This document shows, piece after piece, positions 4,732 through 57,907 of a stretch of DNA of 64,000 nucleotides (position 1 is the first letter of the stretch; every line of letters begins with the position of its first letter). A program made the position numbers and the translations under genes. The notes beneath the pieces are model-generated. The model did no database searches. It worked only from the letters and a program-made list of their open reading frames with translations, and was not told the DNA's origin. The stretch comes from Lepidodermella squamata (taxonomy: Eukaryota > Animalia > Gastrotricha): contig JBLDXI010000012.1 in NCBI GenBank assembly GCA_047495785.1, positions 930,001 to 994,000 of the forward strand, given 5' to 3'.

Positions 4732-5679
4732 ATGCAATCTGTCTACCCGACCTCGACCTACTGCCCGTCGACCATGACCGGCTACCCGACCATGATGGAC
4801 AAGTACGCCAAGTTCGACTACTACTCGCCGATGAACACCACTGGCTACTTCCCTGGCATGCCGACCACCAGCCCGATCATGCCGACCCCGTTCGCCAACC
4901 CGATGGTCCCGACCCCGTCGACCTGGGCTCCGTACCCGACCACCTTCGGCCCGATGGGCGCCGCCTTCCCCAACACCTGGGCCAACAACACCCCGTTCTA
5001 CAACGAGAACCTGTGCAACGTTGCCTCCCGCCCGACCAGCCCGGTTGAGCTGTACTGCCTCACCAACCCGATCCGCATGATCGACAACGAGGGCAACCGC
5101 CAGCTGTACCTGTGCTTCGAGCTCAAGGGCTTCAAGCCTGAGGAGGTCTGCGTCACCCTGAACAAGGCCGAGCGCGCTGTCATCGTCGAGGCTGCCCAGG
5201 ATGCCAAGGACGGCAAGGAGCACCAGATCACCCGCAAGTACTCGCGCAAGTTCGTCCTGCCCGAGGTGAGAACGAATTTTTCATTAAAATCTCGAATTTT
5301 TTGCATTCTATCTATTTAATAGACCCTTGCCAAGATCGACCTGACCAAGGTTGAGCTCAAGTCGTGCCTGACCCAGGAGGGCTACCTCGTCGTCGAGTGC
5401 CCGCTCCCGAAGATGACCACCGAGGAGATCGCCAAGTCGCCGATGATGCCGCCAATGAACGCCTACCCGTTCGCCGGCTACCCGACTGGTTACCCGACCA
5501 CCTTCGGCTACCCGACTGGCTACCCGACCTCCTTCGGTTACCCGTCTGGTTACCCGACCACCTTCGGTTACCCGACCACCTGGGGATACCCGACTGGCTT
5601 CCCGACCAGCTATGGCTGCCCGACCGGTCTGACCTCGACCATCAACAACGTTCGCCCCGTCACCGTCAAGACCGCCTAA
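4732..5679 (+). CDS. Small heat-shock protein (alpha-crystallin domain) with Pro/Thr/Met/Tyr-rich N-terminus and GYPT-repeat C-terminus; exons 4732-5265 and 5323-5679
   Basis: LCFELKGFKPEEV...RKYSRKFVLPE|TLAKID...SCLTQEGYLVVECP fits the HSP20 domain. C-terminal PVTV is IXI-like. Phase-0 GT-AG intron and strong C-ending codon bias. Confidence 0.9.
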
Positions 5680-5881
5680 ACAGCGTCTTATTTCGATTAA
5701 ACTTTATTGATTAGTCACGAGCCGATTTTTTCGCTGTGACACTATATAATGGCAATGTGATAAAAAAACCGAAATTTTCTTTTGATTATTTCGAAATAAA
5801 AATTGGAGGAATTATGACTTTTATTATCGCGACATTATATTTTGACCTGAAATCAAACCTGAAATTGAAAAAAATTATCTG

Positions 5882-9900: not shown

Positions 9901-11161
9901 ATGGCTAAAATGTTTTTCATTTCTGCAGTAAGTAACGCTCTGACATAATAATTTAAATCGCTAATTTTCCCTTCGAAAGGCCATCAAGGTAGCCCCAAGT
10001 CGGTTAAAAACTGTCGAATCATTCGACTATCGAAGCACCTTGCTGAGCCACTGCCGCCTCCATCCTCAAATAAACTCACCCAGCGAGTTTCGAGGGTACG
10101 CCACAAATATTTCCATGAACTTTCAACTTGGCAGATTCTTTGAAATTAACGACGTGGAACAAACATTCTCCGTGCAAGGCACCATTCAAGCCACGTGGTT
10201 CGACTCGTGCTCGGCATCGCTGTACAAAAATTCCAGCATTTGGCCCCCTGAAGCCGCTAATCTTTTCACAGAGGAGGCTGGTATTTATTGGTGGCCGAAA
10301 ATCACCCATCGAAACGCCGTGAATGACGCGTCGTTAGGGAGCGATTATTTCATGAAATTTTCAGTCACTAGAGCGGCAGTTGGCGGGTTTGCTGCTATTA
10401 TAGCCGGAAGATTTGATTCGTACTGCAATTTAGCTTTCTATTACTTCCCCTTCGACGTTCAACGATGCTATATTCGATTTTTTCTAATGAACCGAATCGA
10501 ATATGCTGAGATGGTATCAGCAAATGTGTTCAGCCGAGTAGGGCTCGTCGCTCGAAATTCGAATTGGGAGGTTGTAGCAATTGAAGCGACTGCAAAGCGA
10601 AGTAATATGTCCGACTTGAAATGGTCGGCTTATTCCGAGGCGGTCTTCACGCTGACCCTAAGGCGCAGACCTCGGTATTACATGGTGAACCTTTTCGCAC
10701 CATGCGTTGTTATGAACTTCATGCTGCTAACGACATTTCTTATCCCAGCTAAGTTGCCAGATCGTGCTTCGATTTCGTCGACAATAATGTTAGGAATCAC
10801 TGTTATGCAAACGATTATCAACTCGTTCCTCCCGCAGACTTCTGAGGACATTTTGGCCTCGTACTTCGTACTGGGCCAGATAATTTTCGCGCTCCTGTGT
10901 TCGTTTCAAGCATCATTCATTTGTTGGTACTGTACGAACAGGAAGAAGCGATCGAGACGCATATTGCGTTTTCGGAGATACAAGTGCCAATTTTACCGAC
11001 TAATTGATGCGTGGTCTTTTGTGCTCGCAGTTGCCTTATTATTAATTTCATATTCGGTTCTAGCATGGCTTTATTGCCATCAGGACGGGAAAATCGACGA
11101 TCATTTTAGCGGCAGCGAATCTGAAAGTTACCAAGCAGGTGCTAAAACATCGGGTGATTAA
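9901..11161 (+). CDS. Atypical Cys-loop (pentameric) ligand-gated ion channel subunit; probable exons 9901-9927 and 9980-11161
   Basis: Cys-loop CNLAFYYFPFDVQRC, pre-M1 LRRRPRYY, four TM helices, M2 with 9' Leu. No vicinal Cys. The first exon is tentative. Confidence 0.88.
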
Positions 11162-11441: not shown

Positions 11442-14400
11442 TCAGAAATCAAACAAAGGAAATTGCATGACTCTTTGCATTTCAGTCGGCGCGTAGTAAG
11501 GATAGATCTTAGCCATTGGATTCTGGACATCATCGCTTTCAGCTGTGCGAGCCATAACAGCCTCAACGCAAGTTGTTTCTTCGCCGAGAGAGCTAAAGTA
11601 GAACGCCAAGTTGCGCTTATCGTCTGTAATTTCAATTTTCCTAAGCAACGCTTTGTTGCCAACTTTGTTCGAACGTGTCGTAGCATCAATATCCGGAGCG
11701 AAACCAGTTGGGACACCGATTTCAAGCAGAATCATGCCGGACTTTTCGGCTCGGTTAGTTTTAGCACTGGAAAATAAAACAAAAATTCTTCAAAATAACA
11801 ATTAAATAACAAAAGCTAACTTGGCACAGGCGAGATAGCTGTATGAAGGTCCGGGTTTCTTCGAGATTTCCAAGTTGAAATCCCCGGTATCAACGCCCTG
11901 TTCACCAAGAGCAACGTTGTATTGAATCGCTAGCTGCGCGTAGATCAGGCCTGTACCCTTAGCTGTCACATCGACCTGCTTCAGCGTCTGTTGGCGCTTC
12001 CGATCAGCTGGTTCGAACAGCTGGAAAATACGGTTGTTCAACGCGTTTACTACGAATTGTTTCTCCACGAAATCGTTCTCATCGCCGAAGGAGAAGCGAA
12101 CCGTGACATTGAGGTCATTTTTGGAAGCGTCAAACGCGGGTAGAAGTGCGATTTCAGATAGGGCGTGAACGCCGATAACCGTGTCTTGGGTTGAAATGAA
12201 GCCACCATTGAAATTGCGACGACTCAACAGCCATTTTGCGACGCCTAGAGCGTACGTCGTCCAGCGTTGGCTGCCGATATTTAACATGGCAAGGACAGCG
12301 TAACCAGCGGTTTCGATTTCATTGGCACGGCTCGACGATTTCCAGTGGACACCTTGGTCTGCCGAGGCGATAGATTCGAGGCGTTGTAGAGCTAACTCGG
12401 CCTGTGGCTTATCGCCAGGCAGGATTGAGCAGGCATAGGCGGCAAGAGCGAGTTGATAAGCGTCAGTTGAATCGGCGATAGTTTTGAAAATGGCGCTTCG
12501 AGTCGATGCGATTGAGCTCCAGCCAAACTGAGTCGCGTTACCGCCAGATTCGGCGAAAGTTGCGTAGATGTAAGAGGCTAGGTTGACATCGCTCGAAACA
12601 CCACCCTTCATGTCTACAATTGAGAGGAAAAAAGTTCACCAGGTAAAAAATGTATCATTTTAAATTTTAAATTATTTAAAATTACAAACATGAAATCGCC
12701 TTGATTTTCGGAAGTTTTAAATACATCTTTTATATTGAAAACAAGGCAATTAAAAGTAAAATTAAAATTGCCCTAATTTTAAAAAATTAAGCTCATTCTT
12801 ACTCTCAAATTTCATTGCGATGAAATAATAAAAAAAAATTCGAAAAACTAATTTTGAACAGCTCAGAAAATGACTTCAAAAATCAAAGACGGTCGAGGGA
12901 CATTCTCATCTCCATTCAAACTTTAAAAAAAACTTGATTTTTTGGTTAAAAATACGGGAAAATTTTAATTTCTTGAGAATGGATACGACCAAACCAGGTC
13001 AAAATAGATTCAGCCAAATTATTATGCACGTACCTGGACTAAACATGAAACCAGGGTCGTCAAAGAGGCCATCTTCGCGAGCTTGGCTTCGAATAAACTC
13101 CCACGCCGAGTCGAAAAGGTTGTGGCTTATGTCGACGCCGAGTTGCTTCGTGGCTGATTTGAAGCTGCGGAACACGAACGCTGTTAGCCAAGTGCTGCTG
13201 AACCGATCTCGAGGGCCGAAAGCACTGAAACCGCCGTCTTCATGCTGCAACTGTAACTGCTCGACGTAGCCTTTTGTAACCAACTGCCAGCACGTTTTGC
13301 GATCATCCGCAGTCAATGAGCCAGATGCCATTTTGAATTTGCAAGTGATAACCTCAGTAGCCAAGGTCGCCATTTGCTGCTCGCCGCAACCTTTCGGCAA
13401 GCTGATGTAACTTCGCGAATTCGACAGCAAAGGTCCAAGCACATTGCCGGTGACAGCGAAGTAAAACGCCTTCGATCCATCGACCAAGAACGGAGACAGC
13501 TCGTCAATCTCAATTTTGAAGCTGGAAACTGGGTTCTTCGAAACTATTTGCAACGTGGAACCTTTGTTGGCGAAACGTTTTTCACCCTCAGCTTCAACTT
13601 GGATCTCCTTCTTAACCCCATCGAAGCTGTCGTCATTGGACCCGTTAAGAAACAAGTTCAGCTTGCCGAGTGAGATTGGTTTGATCCAGAATGAAACTGA
13701 TGAGCCGCGATTCGGTGGTACAACAATTTGCCAGACAAGGACATCGCTCGAATAGGATTTCCCGTCGAGGCTAAATTCAAAATCATCGGATTGAGCGAGT
13801 TGCAGTTTAATATCGTTTGGCTCGGAACGGTAGTTGAATGCTGTAGCTTTGATGAGTAGCTTTTCGCCTCGAATCATCACCGACTGGTTGAATTCAAGAT
13901 TTACGAAGAAGTCTTGGAAGACGAGAACTTCAGCCGGCGAGTTCAGGGTTCCGAATTCGGCGTCATTCGTCAGGCCAAAAGCAGTGACGACATACGTGGT
14001 AATCGTGTCAGGAACTGTTAGAAGCTGCTCATAAGTTCCGTTCGAGCTGGAGTTATATAAGAGAAAACGATGCATTTCTATAACAATTAGGATCCCATTT
14101 TTAGCCTGGTGTATTTGCATTTTATCCAAAATTGTTGGGGTTGATCAGGATAATTCGGCTCTAAATAGGATTTCCCATGAACTTTGAAGAATTTTGGTTC
14201 ATTTTCCCAACTAAGAACTCAAATTAAAACAAAACAGTAGACTTGCTTCAGAAAGGTCCGATAGGTTCCGATAGTTACCCATAGGTCCCCGCAGATAATC
14301 CCCTACTACCTCGGGGGCCTATCGGGGATTTAGGACCTATGGGTAACTATCGGAACCTATCGGACCTTTGTGAAGCAAGTCTACTGTTTTATTTTAATTC

Positions 14401-17400
14401 GAGTTATTAGTAGGGAAAGTAGGGGACTCGGAAGTACAGATGTAATAGCTTAAAGCGCTAAATGAATTAAATTACTCAATAAAAAATCAAAATAATGCTT
14501 ACGGAGAAATGAAGAATAAAATATCTTACTTGGAGCGGAAAGAATACCACAGCCACGTTTCGGCGAAATTATCGCGGACTCGCTGGTTCATCTTCTTGTT
14601 TTGGCTGCTGACAGATTGTGGCCTGATTCCCCCGAAGCCTGCCCCGCCTAACATGCCGCCATAGGGTATGAAACCAGCGGAGCGGTCTTCATTGCCAGCG
14701 TCATCAGCATAATCAGTCTGATATGTTGCAATCTGACCGCAATACTTTTGATCTACAAAATTAGTTATCAGCTCAACGCGAGCAGCCTATTCAATCATAT
14801 AATAATCATTAATAAATTTATCTTTATTCGAGAACAAACTTTGAAAACAGCTTTTGCGCAGGCTTCCTTTATTTTGTTCGGCCACCAGCCGCAATTTCCA
14901 GAGCATGACGAGTAAGAGGGATAGCCAGAGGATAGGCTCAACGCGAATTCAGAGCGAACATTGCCGGCAGTTACATCGTTGCCAGTTCCAGACATCAGGC
15001 GAACACTTTTATCCACCGCTAACAACGCGACGGTTGTGTTTGGCTGAGATGTTTCAACTCGCATAACCACCTCGCCACCAGGTGTAGTCCGACTAGGGGT
15101 GAACTTTACGCTGAGAAGGCCGTTGCCCTTGGCCTCGGCGACTTCGAGATGATAGCCATCGGAAATGATCACACCAGACGGATCAATGGTCCAAGCGATG
15201 ACGGAAACTTGTGGTGCCGAGCTTGCGGGTAAGATGGATTTTCCAACTAAAAAATCCGTCGATTTCGAGAGATTGTAATCTTGCTGGGCTAAAATTCCGC
15301 CATTTTTGACAATCTGGAAGCAACACATTACTTTAATTTAGCTCATTTTAAATATACTAACCATGACATGAATGACATCAGCTGGAAAGTTTGTCCTAAC
15401 TTCGTACTCCAGAAACTGCCGCTCCTGAAATTACGATTAAAAGACCTTAAGAAATTGATTGCAAAATATTCTAACCTTCGGGGTCTCACCACCAGCTCCA
15501 ATGAAGTTAAGAGCAATAGCGTTGTTATTCATCTTGCGCCATGAGTTTCGGTTAGAAACTGCCACGCAGTATTCACCGTTTTCTGTCTCTTCTTCAATGC
15601 CGACATTGATAATCGCGCTTTGGGCTTCGTTCGAAGTCTCGAAAATTCCAACAGCAAAACCGTTGCTGTCAGTTTTCACGGTCACCTTTTTGCTAGCCAG
15701 TGGCCTTCCATTATCGTTGCTGTAGCAAGCTGGGTACGGCGTTGTAAATTGGAGAAATTCCAAATTGAGAGTTACGCCAGGAATAGGAGTTTGGTCGAAA
15801 CCGGCAGCTTGAAAGCGGGCGATAAATGGCAGGCCAGGTAGTAGAGATTGCGTTGAGGATTCTTGCATATGAACGTCAAATTTATGCTTGTAAATGTTGA
15901 TATTGCTCGTTTCAGCAGTAATCTTCTCGCCAGTTACGTCGTCAACCACTGAAGCAGTTACCGAGACTGAGCAAGCAAAATCGCGCCGGAAGGTTCGCTC
16001 GAAATCAACGAGGGAGTTCAAATCGTGGGCGTAAAATGGAGTCTTCACCCGAGTGCCGTCAAGCTTGATACTGAGATCGATGGATCGCTTGATCGGGGTG
16101 GCTTTCACGGATCTGTATTCGTGCGACAGAACATGATTGATGTACATTTCCCGCTGCTGTTTCACGCATCCGGTGGAGACTTCAAGTTTGATATTCGCCT
16201 TCCCGATCAAAGGTTTACCGAAAGTGTACCTAAAATTGAAGTAAATTGCTTGTTAACAACTCTTTAGGCCTCTTTTTGGCTTTGCGAAGTACACAGATAA
16301 AGGAATGACCCTATGGAATGGCTTTCATTATATACATGTAATACTTTGCACATTTTTGGAACTTTTGGAGGCCTTTCAAACCTTCTGGACCTTCAGGACC
16401 TTTTGGGCCTGTCAGATCATTTGGACCTTTCGGACCTTTTGGACCTTTCGGAACTTTTGGACCTTTCTGACATCGCCTATCTAAGAGAGCAAACTAAAAT
16501 TTTGAAAATCAGAATTATTTTCCCAACCGTTTTTGAGATAAGATTTTTCTAATTACATGCTTTTAGAGAATTTCGGTTCAATCTTTGCGAATTATTTGCA
16601 AAGCTGCATTATATATGGCTGCTTGTTTTGAATACTATAGAAACAATAAGTAAAACAGAAAAATTTACTTGGCGACGACGAAACCTTGGTAGTTGGACTC
16701 ATTGGATGAATAGCGCCAAAACTCGCCAGGAAACTCGAGCGCCACCTCATACTTCGGCAAAACATACTGTTTCACCGTGAATGATTTCGTCGTTGAGGCT
16801 AAACTAGGATAAAGTGACTGATTGCAAGAATTTTCCCGCTCGCATGCGTCGCGCACTACGACAGACCAGCCCCCGGTCTCGGCGACCTCAGGCAGCGAGA
16901 ATTTCGTCTCGAACAACGCTGACTGCAACGCATCGTGCTGCCATTCGTGTAGCACGGAGCCTTTCGGGTCTTCAACATGAATGATAACCTTCAAAGGGCG
17001 TGCGACTGGTCGACGCGTATAGTCGAGCAGAATGACGCGCAGTTTGACTTCCTGGCCAGGTTTGTAATCGACCTTGTCGGTTTGAATGAAGGCTGCGACG
17101 TCTTTCAACTTCTCGGTTTCCACGCCGATGTCGCGAATTCTTCTCAGACCGAGCGATGTGAACGAAATTCCAACAACAGGGGAGCCTGAAACATTTTTAG
17201 CTGGCCGAATGGTCTAAAATCCGAATTTAAATCAGGTCAGAGCTAAAATTATTTCATTCTATACTTTGAAGGTAAATTGTTCCGTTCCGTCTGAAAGCAA
17301 AAAAGTTATATAAAATTTTAGGAATCTTTATTCGAACCTACATTTAGTTTGCTCGAATTCTTCCTTGGCGAAAACCACGCCAGAAATGGAGAGATTCGCT

Positions 17401-18431: not shown

Positions 18432-19708
18432 ATGGCGAAGCGATTAATTGCAAGCATTTTAATATTGACGCAACAGCTCGCCTCAAGCCTGGTATTTGAC
18501 ACAGATTTCATAGGTTTCCGAGAAAAATTATTTCCCACTATTTTTATATAAAGTATGTAGATGTGTCTCCGGAACGAGTGGACGCGGTAGAAGCTTTTGA
18601 TTATCACCAACATTTAACGCGACACTGCCGTTTACTTCCTCAAATCAACTCGCCTAGTGAATTTCGCGGCTATTCGACGAATATCACTGCCAATTTTCAA
18701 CTCGATCGATTTTTCGAAATCAACGACGTGGAGCAAACGTTTTCCGTGCAAGGCACTCTTCAGATGGTCTGGAACGACTCATGCCTACCAAAATTGTACA
18801 AAAACGCTAGTATATGGCCGCCTGAAGTTACAAATTTATTTACGGATAATAGCGAATATTGGTGGCCGACAGTTATTCATCGGAATGCAGTTCAAGACGT
18901 AGCAATTTCTAGTGAATCTTTCAAAAAATTCACATCAAGTAACGTCAGAGCAGGCTGGTTTGCCGCTGTCATGTCAGGAAGATTCGACTCATCCTGCAAT
19001 CTGGCCTTCTACTACTTCCCATTCGACGTGCAACGCTGTCACATTCGATTTTTTATCATTAACAGAATCGAATATGCCGAAATTACAAAAGCGATTGCCT
19101 TCGGCCGGGTTTCACTCGCGGCGAAAACGTCGAATTGGGAAGTTGTGTGTATCGAAGGTTCGGTCGCCCGGCGAGATATGACTGAAGTGAAATGGGCGAT
19201 TTATTCCGAGGCAATTTTTACGCTGACCCTTCGCCGCCGTTCCTGGTATTACCTTATGAACCTATTTGCGCCCAGTGTCGTCTTGAATTTCATGCTATTT
19301 ACGACTTTTCTCATTCCACCCGAATCGCCAGATCGAGCTTCGATTTCGTCAACAATCATGTTAGGAATCACTGTTATGCAAACGATAATCAACTCGTTCC
19401 TGCCGCAGACTTCTGAGGACATTTTGGCGTCGTATTTGGTGCTTGGCCAGATCCTTCTAGCCCTGATGTGTTCGTTTCATGCATCTTTTATGTGCTGGTA
19501 CTGCACGGCTCGCAGGAAACGTGCGAGACGAGCTGTTTGCCTTTTCGGTTTTAAAACTCGGGTTTATCGATTGGTAGATGCCGGATATTTTGTCTTCTCC
19601 GTTGTTATGATAGTGGTTCTATATGGGGTACTCGCAAGACTCTACAGCAATCAAGAAATAGTGAATCATGGAGATGGTTTGGACTCTGAAATTATTTCAA
19701 AAGAATGA
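18432..19708 (+). CDS. Atypical Cys-loop ligand-gated ion channel subunit (paralogue of 9901-11161); exons 18432-18491 and 18554-19708
   Basis: Signal-peptide exon MAKRLIASILILTQQLASSL, the identical Cys-loop CNLAFYYFPFDVQRC and identical M2 PDRASISSTIMLGITV. Confidence 0.9.
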
Positions 19709-23811: not shown

Positions 23812-24403
23812 ATGCGCGCTGTCCTAGTTTTGGCTGCTGTCGCCCTCATGGGCGTTGGTAACAGCATTTCTGATGCATTATTTGAAATTGCATTTATGTT
23901 CCATTTCAATATCAGCTTTCACCAGCGTTGAGGCTGGTCGTGGTAACAAGGGCAAGAGCGTCTCGAAGAGCGTCTCCATCAGCGTGTCGTACAACCGGCA
24001 GCCGAAGAAGCACGCGATGAAGAAGCGCCCGGCCAAGAAGGCCTTCGTCGGTGGGCGCAAGCACCGCCGTGCCTCGTTCTCCAAGTCCGTGTCCGCGTCG
24101 GTGTCGGCCCGCACGAACAAGCACACCCGCAAGGTCTCCACCAAGAAGTTCATGCGCGTGCACAAGCGCGGATCCATGTCCGGCTCGTACTCGCGCTCGG
24201 GCTCCTTCGGCGGCTACAACAACAAGCATGGCAACAAGAAGGGCCATGGTGGCAAGAAGTTCGGAGGCAAGAAGCACGGCGGCAAGAAGCACGGTGGCAA
24301 GCACGGCAAGGGTCGCAAGGGCAGCAAGAGCGGCAGCTACTCGGCCTCCAACAACTTCTCGTACTCGGTCGCCGTCGAGACCGGTGCTGCTCCCAGCAAA
24401 TAA
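23812..24403 (+). CDS. Secreted highly basic Lys/Arg/Ser/Gly-rich protein with (Ser-X)n blocks, copy 1; exons 23812-23857 and 23916-24403
   Basis: TATAAAA at 23726, signal-peptide exon MRAVLVLAAVALMGV, phase-1 intron, strong codon bias, downstream AATAAA. Confidence 0.88.
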
Positions 24404-24661: not shown

Positions 24662-24678
24662 GTCAATCTTCGGATTGG

Positions 24679-24717
<39 letters not shown>

Positions 24718-24768
24718 GGCCCCTGCGCAAGGATGACACGCAAAATCGTGAAGCGTTCCATATTTTTT
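24662..24768 (+). ncRNA. U6: U6 spliceosomal snRNA, copy 1
   Basis: 5' hairpin GTCAATC-TTCG-GATTGGC, ACAGAGA box, AGC triad, canonical core, oligo-T end. Confidence 0.98.
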
Positions 24769-24872: not shown

Positions 24873-25126
24873 AGGTGCGTTTTTTATTAAAACCGTGGTG
24901 CTATTGTTCAGCGCTGTGATCAATGTTTCGGTGAGATTCGCAACAGAGAAAGCACAATCGGCACGTCTATCATGAACTGAACGGCTCGAATTGCAGTCTA
25001 GGCCGGTCAGAAAAGACAAATCCCCGCGCGGATTACGAACATTTGGCCGCCTCTGTTGCGAATCTCACCGAAACATTGATCACAGCGCTGAACAATAGCA
25101 CCACGGTTTTAATAAAAAACGCACCT
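24873..25126. mobile_element. PIF/Harbinger-like MITE with 76-bp perfect TIRs and 3-bp TSD (TAG)
   Basis: TAG-aggtgcg...cgcacct-TAG. The paralogous empty site with a single TAG is at 33753-33755. Confidence 0.88.
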
Positions 25127-26045: not shown

Positions 26046-27400
26046 ATGGCCTGCTCGTACAACTTCCAACCGACCCTGTCGACCGTCGCTCCCTCGATCG
26101 CCGGCTACTCGAGCCCGATGAACGTCGAGAGCCTGCTCCGCAGCAAGGCCGGCATCTACTCGCCGTCGTCTGTTGAGCGCAGCCTCATCAACGCCGCCGT
26201 CCCGACCCCGTTCGCCGCTGCCGCTGGCATCCACAACGTCAACGCCTTCGCCTCGTCCCCGGTCGCCTACAACACCTTCGTCTCGCCGATCGAGTGCGGA
26301 GCCGAGACCGGCCGCGTCTTCGGTGCCGAGTGCGGTGCCCAGCTGGCCGCCATCGTCGCCGCCCGCCTCAACACCTTCGTCGGCCAGGAGGTGGCCGTCC
26401 GCATCGGCGCCCAGTGGGGAGCCGAGATGTGCGCCAAGCTGGGTGCCGAGCTCGCCGTCAAGCTCGTCAACGGCTGGCCGGTCGAGCAGTGCGCCCGCTG
26501 GTGCTACACCTTCGGAGCCGAGCACGGCGCCGAACTGGGTGCCATCATCGCCCAGCGCCTGGGTGCCATCTACACCGCCGAGTTCGCCGCCCGCATCGGC
26601 GCCGAGCTCTTCGCCGACGTCTGCGCCAAGCAGTGCTACGTCATCGCCGCCCGCGTCGCCGAGTCGCGCTTCGGTGGTGCCTCCAACACCTGGAACGCCG
26701 CCCGCCTCGCCAACAACTGGACCGGCTCGTTCGAGCGCTTCGGTGGCCTCAACTACCCGACCACCTTCGGCCCCTTCGGTGCCAACACCTGGGCCAACGG
26801 CGCCAACACCTGGTCGAACACCCTGTCGGCTGACAACAAGCTGTACAACATCGCCTTCCGCCCGTCCTCCGAGGTCGAGCTCTACACCCTGACCCACCCG
26901 ATCCGCATGATCGACGTCGAGGGCAACCGCCAGCTGTACCTGTGCTTCGAGCTCAAGGGCTTCAAGCCTGAGGAAGTCACCGTCACCCTGAACAAGGCCG
27001 AGCGCGCCGTCGTCGTCGAGGCTGCCCACGAGGCCAAGGACGGCAAGGAGCACACCGTCGCCCGCAAGTACTCGCGCAAGTTCGTCCTGCCCGAGGTGAG
27101 ATTTCTTAGCTCCTCTAACTAATATCCCTAAATTCGTCTCAATTTCAGTCTCTGTCCAAGATCGACCTGACCAAGGTTGAGCTCAAGTCGTGCCTGACCC
27201 AGGAGGGCCACCTCGTCGTCGAGTGCCAGCTGCCGAAGATGACCACCGAGGAGATCGCCAAGTGCCCGACCATGTCCGAGCTGTACAACAAGCTGCCCGC
27301 CTTCGGAGGCTTCAACGCCGCCGTCCAGGCCTTCGGCGGCATCAACGGCGTCAACTGCAACGTCAACCACGTCAAGCCCGTCACCGTCAAGACCGCCTAA
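26046..27400 (+). CDS. sHSP with long Ala/Gly-rich GAE-repeat N-terminal domain, copy 1; exons 26046-27095 and 27149-27400
   Basis: The alpha-crystallin domain is very similar to that of 4732-5679, with the same intron position and PVTVKTA end. TATA at 25930. Confidence 0.9.
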
Positions 27401-28764: not shown

Positions 28765-29362
28765 ATGCGTACCGTGTTCGCTCTGTTGGCATTCGTTCTA
28801 TTGGCTCTCGGTAACAACTTTCCCATTTAGATTATTCGCGAAATAAATCACTCAATTCTCTTCAGCCTTCTCTGAGGTCGAAGCTGGCCGCGGAAACAAG
28901 GGCAAAGGTGTCTCGAAGAGCGTCTCGAAGAGCGTCTCCATCAGCGTGTCGTACAACCGGCAGCCGAAGAAGCACGCGATGAAGAAGCGCCCGGCCAAGA
29001 AGGCCTTCGTCGCTGGGCGCAAGCACCGCCGTGCCTCGTTCTCCAAGTCCGTGTCCGCGTCGGTGTCGGCCCGCACGAACAAGCACACCCGCAAGGTCTC
29101 CACCAAGAAGTTCATGCGCGTGCACAAGCGCGGATCCATGTCCGGCTCGTACTCGCGCTCGGGCTCCTTCGGCGGCTACAACAAGAAGGGCGGCAACAAA
29201 CGCCACGGTGGCAAGAAGTTTGGAGGCAAGAAGTTTGGTGGCAAGAAGCACGGTGGCAAGCACGGCAAGGGTCGCAAGGGCAGCAAGAGCGGCAGCTACT
29301 CGGCCTCCAACAACTTCTCGTACTCGGTCGCCGTCGAGACCGGTGCTGCTCCCAGCAAATAA
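28765..29362 (+). CDS. Secreted basic (Ser-X)n protein, copy 2; exons 28765-28810 and 28866-29362
   Basis: TATA at 28676, signal peptide MRTVFALLAFVLLAL, exon 2 nearly identical to the other copies. Confidence 0.88.
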
Positions 29363-32711: not shown

Positions 32712-33293
32712 ATGCGTGCTGTTTTCGCTTTGACTGCTGTCGTTCTCTTGGCCCTAGGTAAATCTTGAAAGCGTTTGCTGGTCCAATAACTCGTCTTTTT
32801 ACTCTCAGCTTTCTCCGAAGCCGAGGCTGGCCGTGGTAACAAGGGTAAAAGCGTCTCGAAGAGCGTCTCCATCAGCGTGTCGTACAACCGGCAGCCGAAG
32901 AAGCACGCGATGAAGAAGCGCCCGGCCAAGAAGGCCTTCGTCGCTGGGCGCAAGCACCGCCGTGCCTCGTTCTCCAAGTCCGTGTCCGCGTCGGTGTCGG
33001 CCCGCACGAACAAGCACACCCGCAAGGTCTCCACCAAGAAGTTCATGCGCGTGCACAAGCGCGGATCCATGTCCGGCTCGTACTCGCGCTCGGGCTCCTT
33101 CGGCGGCTACAACAAGAAGGGCGGCAACAAACGCCACGGTGGCAAGAAGTTTGGAGGCAAGAAGTTTGGCGGCAAGAAGTTCGGCGGCAAGCACGGCAAG
33201 GGTCGCAAGGGCAGCAAGAGCGGCAGCTACTCGGCCTCCAACAACTTCTCGTACTCGGTCGCCGTCGAGACCGGTGCTGCTCCCAGCAAATAA
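32712..33293 (+). CDS. Secreted basic (Ser-X)n protein, copy 3; exons 32712-32757 and 32809-33293
   Basis: TATA at 32620, signal peptide MRAVFALTAVVLLAL, conserved exon 2. Confidence 0.88.
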
Positions 33294-33544: not shown

Positions 33545-33561
33545 GTCAATCTTCGGATTGG

Positions 33562-33600
<39 letters not shown>

Positions 33601-33651
33601 GGCCCCTGCGCAAGGATGACACGCAAAATCGTGAAGCGTTCCATATTTTTT
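33545..33651 (+). ncRNA. U6: U6 snRNA, copy 2
   Basis: Same sequence as copy 1, with the upstream element at 33468-33480. Confidence 0.98.
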
Positions 33652-34674: not shown

Positions 34675-36016
34675 ATGGCCTGCTCGTACAACTTCCAACC
34701 GACCCTGTCGACCGTCGCTCCCTCGATCGCCGGCTACTCGAGCCCGATGAACGTCGAGAGCCTGCTCCGCAGCAAGGCCGGCATCTACTCGCCGTCGTCT
34801 GTTGAGCGCAGCCTCATCAACGCCGCCGTCCCGACCCCGTTCGCCGCTGCCGCTGGCATCCACAACGTCAACGCCTTCGCCTCGTCCCCGGTCGCCTACA
34901 ACACCTTCGTCTCGCCGATCGAGTGCGGAGCCGAGACCGGCCGCGTCTTCGGTGCCGAGTGCGGTGCCCAGCTGGCCGCCATCGTCGCCGCCCGCCTCAA
35001 CACCTTCGTCGGCCAGGAGGTGGCCGTCCGCATCGGCGCCCAGTGGGGAGCCGAGATGTGCGCCAAGCTGGGTGCCGAGCTCGCCGTCAAGCTCGTCAAC
35101 GGCTGGCCGGTCGAGCAGTGCGCCCGCTGGTGCTACACCTTCGGAGCCGAGCACGGCGCCGAACTGGGTGCCATCATCGCCCAGCGCCTGGGTGCCATCT
35201 ACACCGCCGAGTTCGCCGCCCGCATCGGCGCCGAGCTCTTCGCCGACGTCTGCGCCAAGCAGTGCTACGTCATCGCCGCCCGCGTCGCCGAGTCGCGCTT
35301 CGGTGGTGCCTCCAACACCTGGAACGCCGCCCGCCTCGCCAACAACTGGACCGGCTCGTTCGAGCGCTTCGGTGGCCTCAACTACCCGACCACCTTCGGC
35401 CCCTTCGGTGCCAACACCTGGTCGAACACCCTGTCGGCTGACAACAAGCTGTACAACATCGCCTTCCGCCCGTCCTCCGAGGTCGAGCTCTACACCCTGA
35501 CCCACCCGATCCGCATGACCGACGTCGAGGGCAACCGCCAGCTGTACCTGTGCTTCGAGCTCAAGGGCTTCAAGCCTGAGGAAGTCACCGTCACCCTGAA
35601 CAAGGCCGAGCGCGCCGTCGTCGTCGAGGCTGCCCACGAGTCCAAGGACGGCAAGGAGCACACCGTCGCCCGCAAGTACTCGCGCAAGTTCGTCCTGCCC
35701 GAGGTTAGTAAAATTATTGAAATTTCAATCGACTCTGACTTCAAGCTTTCTTCTATCTTTCTAGACCCTTGCCAAGATCGACCTGACCAAGGTTGAGCTC
35801 AAGTCGTGCCTGACCCAGGAGGGCCACCTCGTCGTCGAGTGCCAGCTGCCGAAGATGACCACCGAGGAGATCGCCAAGTGCCCGACCATGTCCGAGCTGT
35901 ACAACAAGCTGCCCGCCTTCGGAGGCTTCAACGCCGCCGTCCAGGCCTTCGGTGGCATCAACGCCGTCAACTGCAACGTCAACCACGTCAAGCCCGTCAC
36001 CGTCAAGACCGCCTAA
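34675..36016 (+). CDS. GAE-repeat sHSP, copy 2; exons 34675-35703 and 35765-36016
   Basis: Near-identical to copy 1 with a 7-aa in-frame deletion and a different intron sequence. TATA at 34559. Confidence 0.9.
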
Positions 36017-36890
36017 ATGAAAGCCAAATCCAAAGAGAAGATGAGCAATAATGCGCAATGCTAAAGAACCTTTCTTGAGAAAAATTGTGATAACATTAGA
36101 CTTGATATTGATATTCCTGTGCGATTTGCGATTTCTCTCAAGACATTAAATCCAGAGATGTTGCGTATTCAAGGTTCCATTGAGTTTTTCTATGACCCAA
36201 TGTGAGAGTTCAGTTTCAGTTATAACGATTATAATAGCGATAGCGGTACCAATGGCTTCCAAACAAGGTCAAAGTTCGCCTCCACGTCATGCAACACTTT
36301 TTGCACCGAACGTCGATAATTTTTCCTATTCAATCGTAAGCAACAAGTATGCAAATATTCCTGATCGCTTAATTTCGCCCGAGTCCAAAAGGGGGTTGCT
36401 GGATTTTTTAGAAAAAATTAAGATCATACTTCTTGGGATCAATTTTATATTTAGATTTGCCCCAACGTCAGCCTCATCTGACGACCAATTCGCGAGGCGT
36501 GGTGACTGGCCCTGAGCGCGAGCTTGGCCACACGAGGTCGGCGACCTTCACCAGATGTACGTTCCGGTCTGGTGGCTCTTTGATTAGTGCCACTTCCGGA
36601 GGGGTCAGTCGCTTTCAGAGCGGCTTTTTTAAGAATAAGAATAATCAAAGAGTGTTTCGTCAATTTGAGCATTATGTATATTTTACAGATAGGCTGATGT
36701 TCCCTAGTTCTTGTAGTAATTGAAAATCGAACACCGTAGAAGTATTTCGAACTTTCTCTTTGCCCTGATTTTATCACGTACATTTTATCCGTTAACGAGA
36801 AAAACCGGGCGAATTTGTTTAGCAGTTGGAAAATAGAAGTTGAAACTGGCACAATCTGATTTTGTTGTCTGATGATGGTATTTCACTTAA

Positions 36891-37292: not shown

Positions 37293-37848
37293 TTAAATTG
37301 CAAGTTCAAATTTCTAGTTCAAATGAAAATAAGAGGTCGATACCTCAGCACGCCGAGCTCTATTCATAATCGCGACTGCAAGACATACAAAAATGGGGAA
37401 CGGCTCTCCCTGGAATTTTCCAAAACCTGGAAATATTTTGTAAATTTCCTGAAAAAACCCCTAAATTCCATGCATTTTTAGGCGTTTTTCAATACTCCTT
37501 AGCGACGATTTTTGCGCGCTGCGCCAGCAAACCATTTTTTCAAATATGCTCTTCAAAAACATAGTCATAATAATCCGCTTAAAATCTGGAAAATATCGGG
37601 ATGTTCCCTTTTCTTACAAAATATATGCCTAAACAGGTTTGGTGAGGCATAGCTTCATTTCGCCGGTCATTTTGAGCTGAAAAACTGATAATGAAAGTAC
37701 CAACAAAAATCTCAAGAACTGATTGTGATACTTTATTGCTGCGCAGCTTTCGCACAATCGCACAACAGAAGGCATATGGAAAAACGTATTGAGAAAAAGT
37801 CAAAACAGAAACAAAGCCAGCAGATAGTTTTAAAAAATGCAATCCTGT

Positions 37849-38852
37849 TTAGACGAAAGCGCTATAATCGAAAATGTTATCGTTGAGGAAATCCATGAAT
37901 TCAGTGACTCGAGTATAGACGCCGAGTCTATTTTTCTCAGCGCAGCTGCGGCCGAAGGAAGTCACCCCATGAAGCACCCAGTTGTCGTTCGGACCAACCT
38001 TGCACACAAGCGGGCCTCCAGCGTCACCTTTGCAGCTATCGCGTCTTCCTTCTTCATAGCCGGCACATATCATGCGAGAAGCAATTTCTGGATAAAATCG
38101 AACTTGGTGCTTAAGTCTGCGAGTAAATAAGCAGCAAACAATAACTTGATCGGAGGGATCCTGATAGTAGCACTGGTCATTAGCCATGATGGGTACAGCT
38201 ACCTCATTCAGCTCGTAATCAATACCTGTTCCCTTAGTGTCGCCAAAACCAGTGACGTAACATGTTGTGCCAACTGCCAGCTGGTCTGATGTGTTGAAAG
38301 GCAGGCAAGCTGGATGGACCCATTTATTGAAGGTGGCACCGGGTGTATTGAGACGCATGATTGCAAGGTCACAGTCATGCAAGGTTATGTTTCCGTAATT
38401 CGGATGAATAATTCATGATTATGATGGTTTCGGCCACCAAAAGCTGGACTTTCTCGTTGCTCGAGTCATCAAAAAAGTACGCCCTATTTGTCCCCACCCA
38501 AAGTTCAAAATCTTCAGGATTATTCGATCTGATAAACATCTTCGCTGCGGTGATGATATGACGTGGTGAAATGAGAGTTCCCCCGCCAATCATAGTTCGG
38601 CCTTTATACTTCACCACGACTTGCCACGGCCACGAATGCGGTCGGGAGGCTTTGCCACCAACGACTCGCCTTTGCCCAACGATGATTTCGTGATCGTAAA
38701 ACGGTTTGCCACAATTAGGTAAGATTTGTAGTCGTGTCCGTCGCTGTGCTGCTGGTCGGATCGGTTGACGGGAGGTCAGCTTCACCGCCCATCGACACCC
38801 CAAGTTGGCAAAAGCTCGCAAGAGCAATCAACAGCAAGCAGAAAAGTTTCAT
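37849..38852 (-). pseudogene. Frameshifted trypsin-like serine protease homologue, copy A
   Basis: The signal peptide MKLFCLLLIALASFC is out of frame with RVVGG..SWPWQ. A second shift lies near 38410 and a 4-bp deletion near 38078. Motifs are TAAKM and GDAGGP. Confidence 0.8.
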
Positions 38853-38916
38853 ATTTTGGATAATTAAAATGGGAAATGTGTATCATTGTGGAACCACTGG
38901 TAAGTTGAACTGTGGC

Positions 38917-39190
38917 GCGCACGCTGATTGGTCAATTTATCGTTGCTAATGACTCCGGAATGAAACAATTTAGTCGTGCGATCCACTAATAAATTATTGT
39001 ATATTTATGCAAAAAATGACCTTGCCACACCCTCTGCACGGTTTCCATTGACCACGAGCGTAAACTCCATATTAATGGTGGTAAATTGCTGCGGCAAAAA
39101 ACACTTGTGGCAAAAAATCTTATGGTTCGCACGACCAACATGTTTCATCCGGGAGTCATAGCAACGATCGATTGACCAATCAGCGTGCGC
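38917..39190. repeat. Imperfect long inverted repeat (old MITE-like); duplicate at 51097-51370
   Basis: gcgcacgctgattggtcaat...attgaccaatcagcgtgcgc arms, with about 70 bp or more of imperfect pairing. Confidence 0.65.
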
Positions 39191-39223
39191 ATTCGATTGG
39201 ACTTTTAAGTGGTCACACAATGT

Positions 39224-39470
39224 CAAGTGATGTTAAGTACCGGATGCTGAACTTCTGACTCCTCCATAATAATTTTCTCGCGCCGTCGAACCATTTTTTG
39301 CAAATGCTAAAAATAGTAACAAAATCTTCGATATATAGTGATTTGCTGTAAAGCTAAAGCTAAAAATAGAACATGTTACTATTTTTAGCATTGCAAAAAG
39401 TGGTTCGACGGCGCGAGAAAATTATTATGGAGGAGTCAGAAGTTCAGCATCCGGTACTTAACATCTCTCG
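39224..39470. mobile_element. hAT-like palindromic MITE with 8-bp TSD CACAATGT
   Basis: About 95-bp inverted arms, with the direct repeat cacaatgt at 39216-39223 and 39471-39478. Confidence 0.85.
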
Positions 39471-39739
39471 CACAATGTATGTCAAAACACTTTGTGTTGA
39501 GTGTTAAGTGTTGAGTTCCGATGAGCCTTGCCATTACCTTTACATCATTAAGCGAATCATAAGGCGACAACAGGTGCTGATGTCGCATGGCTTTTGTATA
39601 CTCTCATGCCCAATCCGCGCGATAATTAAACTTAATTAGCAACACCATGGGCGTCAGCTTTTTATTCATCAGCGGCTTGGAGGTATGGGAAAACAATTTC
39701 CATTTTCTATGGAAGCTGGAAGCGGCTCTGCTTTGACAT

Positions 39740-39838
39740 CTTCCGAATATTGGTCGACGGTTCAGACGTCCGCCGCTGCAACTGGTGACTAACTTAGCCT
39801 TCACCGCGGCGGCCCGGGTTCGATTCCCGGTCGGAGAA
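39740..39838 (+). pseudogene. tRNA-Glu-like pseudogene with intact 3' half
   Basis: TTCAC-CGCGG-CGGC-CCGGG-TTCGATT-CCCGG-TCGGAGAA followed by TTCTTTT. The 5' half is aberrant, with about 22 extra nt in the anticodon loop. Confidence 0.55.
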
Positions 39839-40589
39839 TATTCTTTTCCGAGGGTAACTACATCTTAGTCTGGAGTTAAACGGCGAGCGTCGCAAAAAAC
39901 CACACTCACTCAGTTTTTTGCGAATGTCGCTCAGCCACCATTTTCTTATTGACAAGCATTAATGTCTTTCGTTCCATGTTTCAAAACTGGCAGGGCTAAA
40001 TTTTGCCACATTCGGGACGCCTACAACGCAAAAGCCGAGTGCTGTGTTGTGCCACGCTTCGCCCAAGACAGTAAAGACATCGTCGGTGTAGACTTGAATC
40101 ATGATGCATAGTCGGTACCAGACACCGAGAGAAGGTTGGCAGTATACAACGTGTATAAAAGCGGAACCCTGTGGTTTACAGTGATGAAGGAGCCGGCGAC
40201 AAGAGGCTGATGGAGTCGGCCAGCCGACGGTGTTAGCGGTGGGCAAGCTTGTGCATTAAAACAGCACGCCATAGGCAGAATCGTGAAGACTACGTTACAA
40301 TCTCACTAAAAATCGTTAGACTTTTTTGGCTGATATGCCGCTCACCCAAACTTTACTTCATTCACTTCAGTAAAAAGTATGTTCAAATTTAGAGGGCTGT
40401 GATCGAAAAATAAAGTATTATAAATTTATAGTGCGATTTATATTTTTTATATTGCACATAAACTTGATGATTTATCGACGCTTTTATATCAACGCCTGTC
40501 TTAATCGACATCATCCAAACAATTGTTTTTATTTTCAAATATAGAATTGTCCCCAGAAATATAGGTCGAGTAGCTTTGACAATTCGATA

Positions 40590-42010
40590 TTTTACGGTAT
40601 AACATTCGTAAATCGTTCATATCTGAACTCGCCGCACTCGATTTACTCATCGCAACTCGCCTCCGGCTCGTTCCGACTCGTAAATCTCGGGCGGCTCCGT
40701 ACAGATATAAACGTTTTACTCATGTCATACCATACAAATATAACACTGTGTCTATATTTTTAACCTTGAAACACAAATCTATATTTTTTCATACTTCAAA
40801 TATAGATTTGAATATGAACTATATTTCTGATCTATGTCTGAAATATAGATTCAGGTCTATCTATATTTTTGACCTGGAAAATCTATATTTTGAATATAGA
40901 TGCCCATTTCCAAGGCCAATACTTCCGAGGTCTTGAAACAGCTTATTCTAACGGAAAAACACAGGGATATAGTTTTCGCTACGCAATTTATTATGAAAGA
41001 AAATGGAGAAATTCGATTTTGAGAATAATTTAGACGGGGACAGCTTGGCAGTCGGGCTGCAAAAATTGGCCGTAGGAACCAGAATTTCTCAGAAAACTCC
41101 GGAAAATCGGGCAGCATTTCGTCCCCGCTGTGCATGAATTCGCAGCGATTCGTGGGTCGGATCGCGCAGAAGCAAGTCGTCTCCTTAGATCGATAGAACG
41201 CGCCGGGAACACTGAGCAGAAAATCCAGAAAATCGGACAGCATTTTGACCCCAATTCGCAGAAATCACCACCTTGAAACTTGATTGAACTTGGAACACTC
41301 TGCCGCAGCGACAGTTCCGATTCGATCACGTTGAAAACATCGACGTACCAAACACCGTTGCGACGCGCTTATCCGAAACTGAGCAATTTTCAACCACCAG
41401 AGATGAAGTTCCGACGGACTGCTTGACCTTCTTTCATCGCCACCAAACGTGTCGTTCAAATCGAACCAGTTTCTTCGGATTGTAAAGGCGCGTGGTTTTC
41501 GCGAACGTTGATTTCGAATTTCGAAGGAACCAGGTTTCAGGGTTGATGGTTTATCGAACAATTCGGCTTCAATTGCGGCAGCTTTGCCAATCGGAGCAGA
41601 ATTCTGGGAGCATTTGTTCGTGAAATTCGAGCAGAATTCCGGTCGGACAGAAAATCGACTCTCAAAACGAGACGAAATTCGAACGAATGAGAAAAATGAG
41701 CGAGAATGAATAGAAAGCCATTTTTCAATGAAATTTTAATTTGGATTTTTTATTATTTTTTATTTTGCGTTGCGAAAAATATAGACACCGTGTAATATTT
41801 TACGATACAACATTCGTAGAAACCTATATTTTCGTGAAGCACTCGTATAGATCTCGTAAAACTCATTCACCTCGTGAAATCTCGTCTCCACTCGCCTGCC
41901 GGCTCGTTCCGCCTCGATTTCACTCGTTTCATTCGTTTTACTCGATCTATATTTCGTGCTTCACTCAAATATAGATTCCTACTCATGTTATATCATACAA
42001 ATATATCCCT
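40590..42010. mobile_element. Putative non-autonomous DNA element bounded by diverged direct repeats (possibly Crypton-like); duplicate at ~52765-54130
   Basis: Related blocks ttacgRtaYaacattcgta...ctcgcct(g)ccggctcgttcc...tactcatgt..catacaaatata at 40590-40747 and 41800-42010. The region is absent from the older unit near 29900. Confidence 0.4.
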
Positions 42011-42947
42011 TATCGTGTCAGATATACATGGTATTGCAATATTACCTGACATGCGCGACCCAACGAAACCTAGCACTAGGTTTGTACGGCAATAAGTGAT
42101 CGCCAATCAATCTAAAATAGAGCATTATCTTTAATATTTGAATCTCAATTATCCCCATCTCGGATTTCCCCGGCAAAAATCCTGGGTAAAGTATAGACCA
42201 AGGGCTGTCGTTCCATATAATTCAACGAGACGGGAACTTTGCCATGTCGGATGTAAAAAATCGTGGAAAAAGTGCGTTATCACTAAAAACAAGTCTAAAA
42301 ACAAACAATCACTAAAAATTTCATCGAAATCCGAGATGGAGCTGATTGAGATTTAATTAATTAAAGATAGTGCTCCATTAGATTGATTGATGCTCACTTT
42401 TTGCCGTACACACATTATTACCCTCATCTAGTGATTTCTTTGGGCACGCGACCCAAAAAGAAAAAAATCGTGATGAGTCATCTCGGCACACATAAATGTA
42501 CTAGCGTGTCCATAGAGCTGTCCATAGAGCTAGTTTAAAACTAGCGTGTCAGATCTACAGTATTTATTTATCTATGGTGTGCGTACGCCATTGTGTTGCT
42601 GCTAATAATTTATTCATACTATACATAGGTAAATTGTATGGCCATGAAAAACGCCGTGTATATTCATGCTAAAAATGTCCGAATATAATACAGACTCCTG
42701 AAAAAATTGTCCGGATTTGGTTTGAAAAACAACCCCATGAGACTATTAAAAGGACTGAAACTATCAAAAAGAACACAGTTTCGTTCTTGATTCCTAATTG
42801 CTATATCCATAAAACATAACCGGGTTAAATTGCCAACCTGGTTATTGAATTGCGTTTTATATCGACCTGCGAAGTAAGAGAATTTGAGCAGCTCCAGTAA
42901 AACCTGTTTTACAAATTTTGACGAAATTGAAATCTGCAGGCCTCTAT

Positions 42948-44763: not shown

Positions 44764-45197
44764 AATTGCAATTGGATAAATTTTTCAGTGCGATCAGGAC
44801 TTTCTTTTTATTTTTAAAAACAGAAAAACAGTAAAATGTTGCGGAGAGCTATTCATTTCCAAAACGACCAACTCGATAGTTCCCATGCAACGTGAAAATC
44901 TTTAGATAATTCAGAATAAGTGCCTCGTTTCAATTCTGCCGTGATTTGACCGAATATCATTCGTTGGAGCTAATCAATTTTCACGGCGAATTTCGTCAAT
45001 TAGTTGAATGATCTGTTCTCAAAAAGAAACCAATATCCAAACTAATCAATGCACTTCTGTCATTAGTGATCAATCGAATGCGCCTCAGAAAATGATAGGG
45101 TGTTGTATAAAAGCTTGGACAGATTTCGACCAAAGGCATCATTGACAATCCTCTGAAATTAAAGATTCATCTTTTCCGTCAAATTCAACATATCAGA

Positions 45198-45787
45198 ATG
45201 CGCGCTCTCCTAGTTTTGGCTGCTGTCGCCCTCATGTGCCTTGGTAAAAATCAGAATCATGCCATCATTACCCATTGCATTTATGTTCAATTTCAATTTC
45301 AGCTTTCACCAGCGTCGAGGCTGGCCGTGGTAACAAGGGCAAAAGTGTCTCGAAGAGCGTCTCGATCAGCGTGTCCTACAACCGGCAGCCGAAGAAGCAC
45401 GCGATGAAGAAGCGCCCGGCCAAGAAGGCCTTCGTCGCTGGGCGCAAGCACCGCCGTGCCTCGTTCTCCAAGTCTGTGTCCGCGTCGGTGTCGGCCCGCA
45501 CGAACAAGCACACCCGCAAGGTCTCCACCAAGAAGTTCATGCGCGTGCACAAGCGCGGATCCATGTCCGGCTCGTACTCGCGCTCGAACTCCTTCGGCGG
45601 CTACAACAAGAAGCATGGCAACAAGCGCCACGATGGCAAGAAGTTCGGCGGCAAGAAGTTTGGCGGAAAGAAGCACGGTGGCAAGAACGGCAAGGGTCGC
45701 AAGGGCAGCAAGAGCGGCAGCTACTCGGCCTCCAACAACTTCTCCTACTCGGTCGCCGTCGAAACCGGTGCTGCTCCCAGCAAATAA
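45198..45787 (+). CDS. Secreted basic (Ser-X)n protein, copy 4; exons 45198-45243 and 45303-45787
   Basis: TATA at 45106, signal peptide MRALLVLAAVALMCL. Confidence 0.88.
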
Positions 45788-46136
45788 ATGATTTCAATGA
45801 AAAACCTTGCTTCAAAGATGATAATTTATTCCATGATCTGAAGAATAAAAACAAAAATTCGCTAAATTCTGTTTTCCTGTTTTCCTGCAAGCCTCTCTTA
45901 TTTGATTTTGGCGAGCGTCGCCGAAATTGTTTTTGTGACACTCACTCAGTTCCTTGCGACGGTCTTTTAGCGACTACTTTGCTAGTCGAGAATCAGCGTA
46001 TTGTTGTCTTTCGTTCATCTTTCGAAATTGGAAGGGTTGAATTTTAGCCGCACCAGCAAAAGTCGAGGCTTTGCCCAAGACAGTTAAGAAATCGTAGGCG
46101 TAGGCTTGAAGTATGATGCTGTCAGTACTGTACTGA

Positions 46137-49994: not shown

Positions 49995-51032
<1,038 letters not shown>

Positions 51033-51403
51033 ATTTTGGATAATTAAAATGGGAAATGTGTGTCATTGTGGAACCACTGGTAAGTTGAACTGTGGCGCGC
51101 ACGCTGATTGGTCAATTTATCGTTGCTAATGACTCCGGAATGAAACAATTTAGTCGTGCGATCCACTAATAAATTATTGTATATTTATGCAAAAAATGAC
51201 CTTGCCACACCCTCTGCACGGTTTCCATTGACCACGAGCGTAAACTCCATATTAATGGTGGTAAATTGCTGCGGCAAAAAACACTTGTGGCAAAAAATCT
51301 TATGGATCGCACGACCAACATGTTTCATCCGGGAGTCATAGCAACGATCGATTGACCAATCAGCGTGCGCATTCGATTGGACTTTTAAGTGGTCACACAA
51401 TGT

Positions 51404-51650
51404 CAAGTGATGTTAAGTACCGGATGCTGAACTTCTGACTCCTCCATAATAATTTTCTCGCGCCATCGAACCATTTTTTGCAAATGCTAAAAATAGTAAC
51501 AAAATCTTCGATATATAGTGATTTGCTGTAAAGCTAAAGCTAAAAATAGAACATGTTACTATTTTTAGCATTGCAAAAAGTGGTTCGACGGCGCGAGAAA
51601 ATTATTATGGAGGAGTCAGAAGTTCAGCATCCGGTACTTAACATCTCTCG
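51404..51650. mobile_element. hAT-like palindromic MITE, duplicate copy
   Basis: Same arms and 8-bp TSD as 39224-39470. Confidence 0.85.
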
Positions 51651-51912
51651 CACAATGTATGTCAAAACACTTTGTGTTGAGTGTTAAGTGTTGAGTTCCG
51701 ATGAGCCTTGCCATTACCTTTACATCATTAAGCGAATCATAAGGCGACAACAGGTGCTGATGTCGCATGGCTTTTGTATACTCTCATGCCCAATCCGCGC
51801 GATAATTAAACTTAATTAGCAACACCATGGGCGTCAGCTTTTTATTCATCAGCGGCTTGGAGGTATGGGAAAACAATTTCCATTTTCTATGGAAGCGGCT
51901 CTGCTTTCACAT

Positions 51913-57317: not shown

Positions 57318-57907
57318 ATGCGCGCTCTCCTAGTTTTGGCTGCTGTCGCCCTCATGTGCCTTGGTAAAAATCAGAATCATGCCATCATTACCCATTGCAT
57401 TTATGTTCAATTTCAATTTCAGCTTTCACCAGCGTCGAGGCTGGCCGTGGTAACAAGGGCAAAAGTGTCTCGAAGAGCGTCTCGATCAGCGTGTCCTACA
57501 ACCGGCAGCCGAAGAAGCACGCGATGAAGAAGCGCCCGGCCAAGAAGGCCTTCGTCGCTGGGCGCAAGCACCGCCGTGCCTCGTTCTCCAAGTCTGTGTC
57601 CGCGTCGGTGTCGGCCCGCACGAACAAGCACACCCGCAAGGTCTCCACCAAGAAGTTCATGCGCGTGCACAAGCGCGGATCCATGTCCGGCTCGTTCTCG
57701 CGGTCGGGCTCCTTCGGCGGCTACAACAAGAAGCATGGCAACAAGCGCCACGGTGGCAAGAAGTTCGGAGGCAAGAAGTTTGGCGGCAAGAAGCACGGTG
57801 GCAAGCACGGCAAGGGTCGCAAGGGCAGCAAGAGCGGCAGCTACTCGGCCTCCAACAACTTCTCGTACTCGGTCGCCGTCGAAACCGGTGCTGCTCCCAG
57901 CAAATAA
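57318..57907 (+). CDS. Secreted basic (Ser-X)n protein, copy 5; exons 57318-57363 and 57423-57907
   Basis: The 5' half matches copy 4. The 3' flank resembles copies 1 and 3 and leads into U6. Confidence 0.88.

Follow-up and report, generated by a model that had tools for sequence, protein, structure and literature searches.

Within a 64,000-nt stretch of the genome of the freshwater gastrotrich Lepidodermella squamata (contig JBLDXI010000012.1, positions 930,001 to 994,000; hereafter the window), an earlier note had pointed to five copies of an unrecognised, secreted polycationic protein, raising the question of what such a family makes and why it should be kept in so many closely similar copies. 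The parent assembly comprises 122,829,359 bp in 157 contigs (43% GC, 83x coverage, 3% heterozygosity; PMC11660948).

Results

Gene structure and predicted secretion

The five claimed copies were recovered as five intact two-exon genes (Table 1), each with a TATAAAA box 86–92 nt upstream of its ATG. Open reading frames on the opposite strand were set aside as shadows of codon bias, and an assembly artefact was ruled out as the origin of the family, since copies 1–4 carry distinct promoters; copy 2 has the most divergent promoter and signal peptide of the five. The signal peptide is a prediction judged by hydrophobicity and a (V/A)EA cleavage motif. All four divergent versions of the leader retain Met-Arg, a hydrophobic core and the (V/A)EA end, bearing out at the sequence level the proposal that the protein is secreted. 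Furthermore, a contig from a 2015 sequencing run labelled with another organism and guessed to be RNA (run X2) omits exactly the 58-nt intron, which is modest evidence for splicing of the leader exon to exon 2, the shorter side of the contig being only 20 letters long and the run also containing intron-like sequence. A run from 2014, of the same organism, contained just 8% of the sequence words, which could reflect either low expression in adults or a fragmented assembly.

Table 1 Coordinates of the Ser-stripe gene family and of neighbouring features in the window
Feature	Position	Strand	Remark
Copy 1, two-exon gene, ATG to end of stop	23812..24403	+	intact
Copy 1 TATA box, TATAAAA	23726..23732	+	86 nt 5' of ATG; position common to five copies
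Copy 1 exon 1, predicted signal peptide n-/h-region	23812..23857 (46 nt)	+	hydropathy mean 2.8–3.0, four divergent versions
Copy 1 intron, phase 1, GT..AG, 58 nt	23858..23915	+	sequence; exact skip in run X2 contig
Copy 1 exon 2: signal peptide end, mature protein (23936–24400), stop	23916..24403	+	
Ser stripe 1, type A, Val/Ile-rich non-Ser face	23957..23992	+	
Near-invariant core: stripes 2–3 and intervening spacer	24056..24226	+	97.7–100% identity, five copies
Ser stripe 2, type A, internal repeat of stripe 1	24074..24109	+	
Ser stripe 3, type B, Gly/Tyr/Phe non-Ser face	24173..24208	+	
GGKK(F/H) repeat spacer, 15-nt period	24248..24301	+	greatest between-copy variability
Ser stripe 4, type B	24323..24379	+	in register through to invariant Glu148
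N-glycosylation sequon inside stripe 4	24353..24361		copy 1 residues 140–142
Copy 1 likely poly(A) signal, AATAAA	24467..24472	+	within conserved 3' element
Copy 2	28765..29362	+	intact; intron 28811–28865; TATA 28676
Copy 3	32712..33293	+	intact; intron 32758–32808; TATA 32620
Copy 4	45198..45787	+	intact; intron 45244–45302; TATA 45106
Copy 5	57318..57907	+	intact; intron 57364–57422; TATA 57226
Small heat-shock genes	26046–27400, 34675–35900, 47335–48500		shorter relative 4732–5700
U6 genes (four)	24662–24767, 33545–33650, 58173–58278, 61947–62052		
U3 genes (two)	36420–36624, 49019–49223		
tRNA genes (four in window)	60421–60649, 62183–62423		
Tandem duplication	37297–45842 / 49446–57962		12.1-kb period
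MITE-like inverted-repeat elements, 215–270 nt	24873–25126, 14203–14418, 39214–39481, 51394–51661		
Cys-loop channel genes (two)	10040–11161, 18563–19708		

Composition and serine stripes of the mature protein

The residue counts put forward earlier (about 155 residues, about 42 Lys/Arg, one acidic residue in copy 1 and no Cys, Trp or Leu) proved accurate. Mature copy 1 has 155 aa with 30 Lys, 12 Arg, 27 Ser, 25 Gly and 9 His (pI 11.9; 16.5 kDa; net charge +41), Glu148 being its single acidic residue; copy 4 has two. Across the five copies the mature protein spans 154–158 aa with 42–44 Lys/Arg and a pI of about 12, and offers as potential cross-link residues only 4–5 Tyr and no Cys.

Likewise, the four (Ser-X)n blocks described before are present, holding 23 alternating Ser in copy 1, a number reached by none of 100,000 composition-preserving shuffles (best 12). 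These stripes, about 12 residues each, fall into two internal repeat types, with stripe 1 paired to stripe 2 and stripe 3 to stripe 4; the non-Ser face of type A is made up of Val/Ile/Ala/Phe/Tyr, that of type B of Gly/Tyr/Phe, and each carries about one basic residue. Lys/Arg occupy 4 of 53 stripe residues versus 38 of 102 in the spacers, which are 21–38 residues long and place a short basic cluster ahead of every stripe. Stripe 1 of copy 2 is longer by 4 residues, the beta-periodic moment is highest in stripe 2, and Glu148 keeps to the alternation of the serine face in stripe 4, following a Ser by four residues. An N-glycosylation sequon within stripe 4 is invariant in all five copies. Dibasic sites occur at residues 30, 44 and 77. 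The described GGKK(F/H) repeats stand as three units, to which one further unit, GGK(H/N), is to be added. AlphaFold2 run without an alignment returned no fold (pLDDT 53, pTM 0.12), which as a single-sequence model is weak evidence of disorder.

Homology searches

Using exon 2 as query, we obtained no matches in a word-indexed protein search and no homologues by phmmer against 1.84 billion representative proteins; Pfam gave no domain match, the ESM Atlas no match for either the whole protein or the core, and PDB sequences one chance match only (E 0.1), and metagenome contigs searched by peptide and by DNA pattern contained no homologue. Two control ORFs with clear Pfam matches, one Cys-loop and one small heat-shock, likewise gave nothing in the word-indexed search, so that low complexity and a shortage of gastrotrich proteins account in part for the blank results. 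The family is thus unrecognised, as first claimed, in databases short of this lineage. It is a genuine and apparently undescribed family of the low-complexity serine/polycation biomaterial kind, probably lineage-restricted and outside any named family. No paper in the literature searched names a protein of the cuticle, egg shell or glue of gastrotrichs.

Comparison with known biomaterials

Caddisfly H-fibroin, defined by its (SX)nE motif together with a giant repeat architecture and built on phosphorylated (SX)n beta-strands (PMC10387566), resembles the gastrotrich protein in its Ser-X runs, whose X is hydrophobic, aromatic or basic, its short linkers and Gly-rich spacers, and in being secreted (here by prediction) by a freshwater animal. 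Unlike H-fibroin, however, the gastrotrich protein has stripes without a terminal Glu, no S-x-E/D anywhere in its mature sequence, and a net positive charge; one gene of >20 kb with tens of modules and conserved termini contrasts with a 16.5-kDa product of dozens of gene copies, and no sequence similarity was detected between the two. The kinship raised earlier consequently failed on the absence of both (SX)nE and a giant modular gene, though alternating Ser-X runs with Gly-rich spacers are present; the gastrotrich protein would work like a miniature, charge-reversed analogue of H-fibroin, outside that family.

Flatworms, the sister phylum of gastrotrichs (PMC11660948), possess a Gly/Arg/Lys/His/Ser-rich cohesive protein with a GRKHS motif, and their glue proteins reach 1,687–7,228 aa, ap3 having 3,700 aa and 88% G/R/K/H/S (PMC9229212). 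Like ap1 and ap3, the gastrotrich protein is a polycation of these five residues (66%) and holds one GRKH tetrapeptide, but it is about 24-fold shorter than ap3, has no GRKHS array and carries Ser-X stripes with Val/Phe/Tyr. Membership of ap3 or ap1 was rejected on the single GRKH, the 66% share and the length of 155 aa.

Diatom silaffins assemble as zwitterions (PMC3806462), and the R5 peptide of silaffin-1 shares with the gastrotrich protein a Lys/Ser/Gly/Tyr composition, the hexapeptide KSGSYS and a potential phosphoserine charge balance. This match, chosen post hoc, has P = 0.02 by shuffle and 0.07 with serines fixed. Unlike silaffin-1, the protein is of animal origin, has no RRIL-type repeat ends and comes with no silica evidence; kinship was rejected, the match being six residues at a level explained by chance and tandem R-repeats with short-peptide processing being absent. 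In sabellariid tubeworm cement, basic proteins and a 73%-Ser polyanion are separate molecules (PMC12621633). There, too, the proteins are small (128–405 aa), secreted and of low complexity, with basic and phosphoserine components cooperating, whereas Ser (17.5%) and Lys/Arg (27%) blocks alternate within one gastrotrich chain; membership of Pc-3/Sa-3 was rejected at 17.5% Ser versus about 73% with polyserine.

Promoters, codon bias and genomic surroundings

The TATA box and extreme C/G-ending codon bias reported for each copy were both confirmed, GC3 being 0.88–0.90 in the five copies versus 0.44–0.55 in most neighbouring genes and 0.93 in the nearby small heat-shock genes. Together with the many copies, these features are consistent with the high-output product proposed earlier. 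The motif TGCGC, chosen post hoc and with a background of 9% per 60 nt, precedes the TATA boxes at 23726, 28676, 32620 and 45106 by 26–50 nt, in all promoter types, which are otherwise unalignable, and is a possible site for a shared regulator. Control through kappa-B was rejected, with no such site within 600 nt of the family's promoters, as was heat-shock control, for which just scattered 8-mers and no three-unit element were found.

The small heat-shock genes (HSP20 by Pfam) have a TATA box and a long Gly/Ala-rich N-terminal extension and were co-duplicated with the Ser-stripe family; a protein search for a homologue was blank. Copies 1, 3 and 5 are each followed by a U6 gene about 250 nt downstream, and a functional linkage was rejected, U6 adjoining only three of five copies and moving with segmental duplications. 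The MITE-like element at 24873–25126 breaks into this unit, separating U6 from the heat-shock gene. Copies 4 and 5 lie, with trypsin-like and P450 genes, in a tandem duplication of 98.2–99.7% identity that is recent or perhaps arose as an artefact of assembling amplified DNA. The two Cys-loop channel genes, divergent and largely single-exon, flank a thioester-protein gene, and the one at 18563–19708 had no homologue in the word-indexed search.

Divergence, homogenisation and copy number

Mature coding DNA is 94–98% identical in every copy pair, and the other mature proteins are 95–97% identical to that of copy 1, whereas the promoter, 5' UTR, signal exon and intron of copy 2 share only 51–60% with the other copies (unrelated DNA, 46–56%). 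With mature regions alike and promoters unalike, old distinct promoters would thus drive one uniform product. Between the five copies pN/pS is 0.07–0.37, indicating that the family is under purifying selection. Copy 5, identical to copy 4 upstream and 91–92% like copy 1 downstream, is by its sequence a recombinant. The simplest explanation of this mosaic would be gene conversion limited to the mature region, aided by codon-level selection.

Copy number was gauged from a 2024 run giving the best match (run X1), in which the 171-nt core forms one contig of depth 3152 and single-haplotype flanks have depths of 40–51. At the published 83x the core depth corresponds to about 38 loci per haploid genome, which we give as 20–40 because contig depth is not strict copy number and amplification bias in the X1 data set reaches 2.25-fold; X1 is probably the amplified source sample and so lends no independent support. 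Runs labelled as organisms B, C and H, which could be related species or samples containing gastrotrichs, carry the core with 0–7 differences over 134–227 nt; four of the five listed changes are silent and the remaining one is Tyr to Phe, and the loose contig ends beyond the core hold different basic spacers. Further runs matching family DNA include pond, biofilm, wetland, peat and wastewater metagenomes (read-set queries excluded the U6 stretch). Overall, the pattern points to a dosage-driven, homogenised bulk product.

Discussion

The family may best be explained as encoding a self-assembling structural protein of the cuticle or egg shell, exported in bulk, a reading to which we give an even chance. 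That so many genes are homogenised, TATA-driven and codon-optimised implies demand for large amounts of one uniform sequence, and the conserved two-faced stripe core implies self-assembly dependent on register. The large secreted solids of a chaetonotid are its scaled cuticle and its egg shell, and silk, tube or cocoon do not suit such an animal. A structural material, as suggested earlier, would remain the likeliest class, although silk, tube and cocoon, named at the same time, fit poorly and cuticle, egg shell or glue fit. Chaetonotid cuticle ornament and resting stages are documented (PMC4563153). Weighing against the structural reading are the missing Fam20C primer and, for cross-linking, the lack of Cys and the small number of Tyr.

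Placing the protein in the temporary glue that the two adhesive tubes at the tail release, as a surface-binding polycation released by an anionic secretion after the ap1/ap3 model, is unlikely but has its appeal in the flatworm sister phylum (PMC11660948) with its GRKHS cohesive protein (PMC9229212), echoed here by one GRKH and the 66% share of those residues. The far greater length of the flatworm proteins and the 88% share in ap3 speak against it, and two tubes (PMC4563153) would be a small sink for dozens of copies; the structural reading is favoured because the large solids are cuticle and shell, while glue would come from two small tubes. Rather improbable is a packaging polycation of secretory or yolk granules, condensing polyanions or storing phosphate outside the final solid: signal peptide, extreme charge and high dosage suit this role, and the dibasic sites could free fragments, but regular two-faced stripes point to ordered assembly over counter-ion storage. 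Equally hard to favour is an antimicrobial role, or one in agglutinating bacteria, for a polycation located in the surface film, the gut or the egg. The protein is small, secreted and highly charged, has Gly/His/Lys repeats and belongs to an animal of microbe-rich biofilm and pond habitats, yet its copies are homogenised under purifying rather than diversifying selection, it lacks Trp, Leu, Cys, a strongly amphipathic helix and a nearby kappa-B-like site, and membrane disruption would need no near-invariant Ser-stripe core. A nuclear protamine- or histone-H1-like protein with a non-working leader is very improbable, since despite a pI of 12, Lys/Arg/Ser richness, basic kinase-type motifs ahead of the stripes and multiple copies homogenised like histone genes, four divergent leaders keep Met-Arg, the hydrophobic core and (V/A)EA, and the contig in run X2 joins the leader exon directly to exon 2.

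Should the product be a cuticle or egg-shell protein, gene conversion among its dozens of copies would let it be supplied quickly and uniformly, as a disordered monomer that its +41 charge would keep soluble. Upon charge neutralisation, by phosphorylation of stripe serines or by an acidic partner polymer, the four stripes would pair as beta-strands, one face bearing Ser and the opposite face Val/Ile/Phe/Tyr, with loops made by the Lys/Arg/Gly/His spacers. Neutralisation by phosphorylation, proposed by analogy, is a reasonable prospect falling somewhat short of an even chance. By arithmetic only, phosphorylation of the 23 stripe Ser would bring the net charge from +41 to between -5 and +6 (-5 at -2 each). 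Canonical Fam20C sites are S-x-E or, once primed, S-x-pS, and the mature protein has neither S-x-E nor any other S-x-E/D primer; the kinase has a strong preference for Glu at +2, and there are also non-canonical substrates (PMC12650399), polyserine among them. The boldest version, tentative and on balance doubtful, is a single-chain, self-neutralising biomaterial in which a primer-independent secretory kinase phosphorylates the stripes, Lys/Arg loops replace the Ca2+ of caddisflies, and the protein is the main block of cuticle or egg shell.

Dispersed copies homogenised solely in their mature region make this family a clear case of dosage-driven concerted evolution, and provide an abundant, conserved probe into the composition of gastrotrich cuticle, shell and glue. 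A 16-kDa chain with polycation blocks and Ser stripes would be a simple model of underwater self-assembly; if the proposal is true, this self-neutralising protein of a histone-like concerted family would be the first such protein identified in Gastrotricha.
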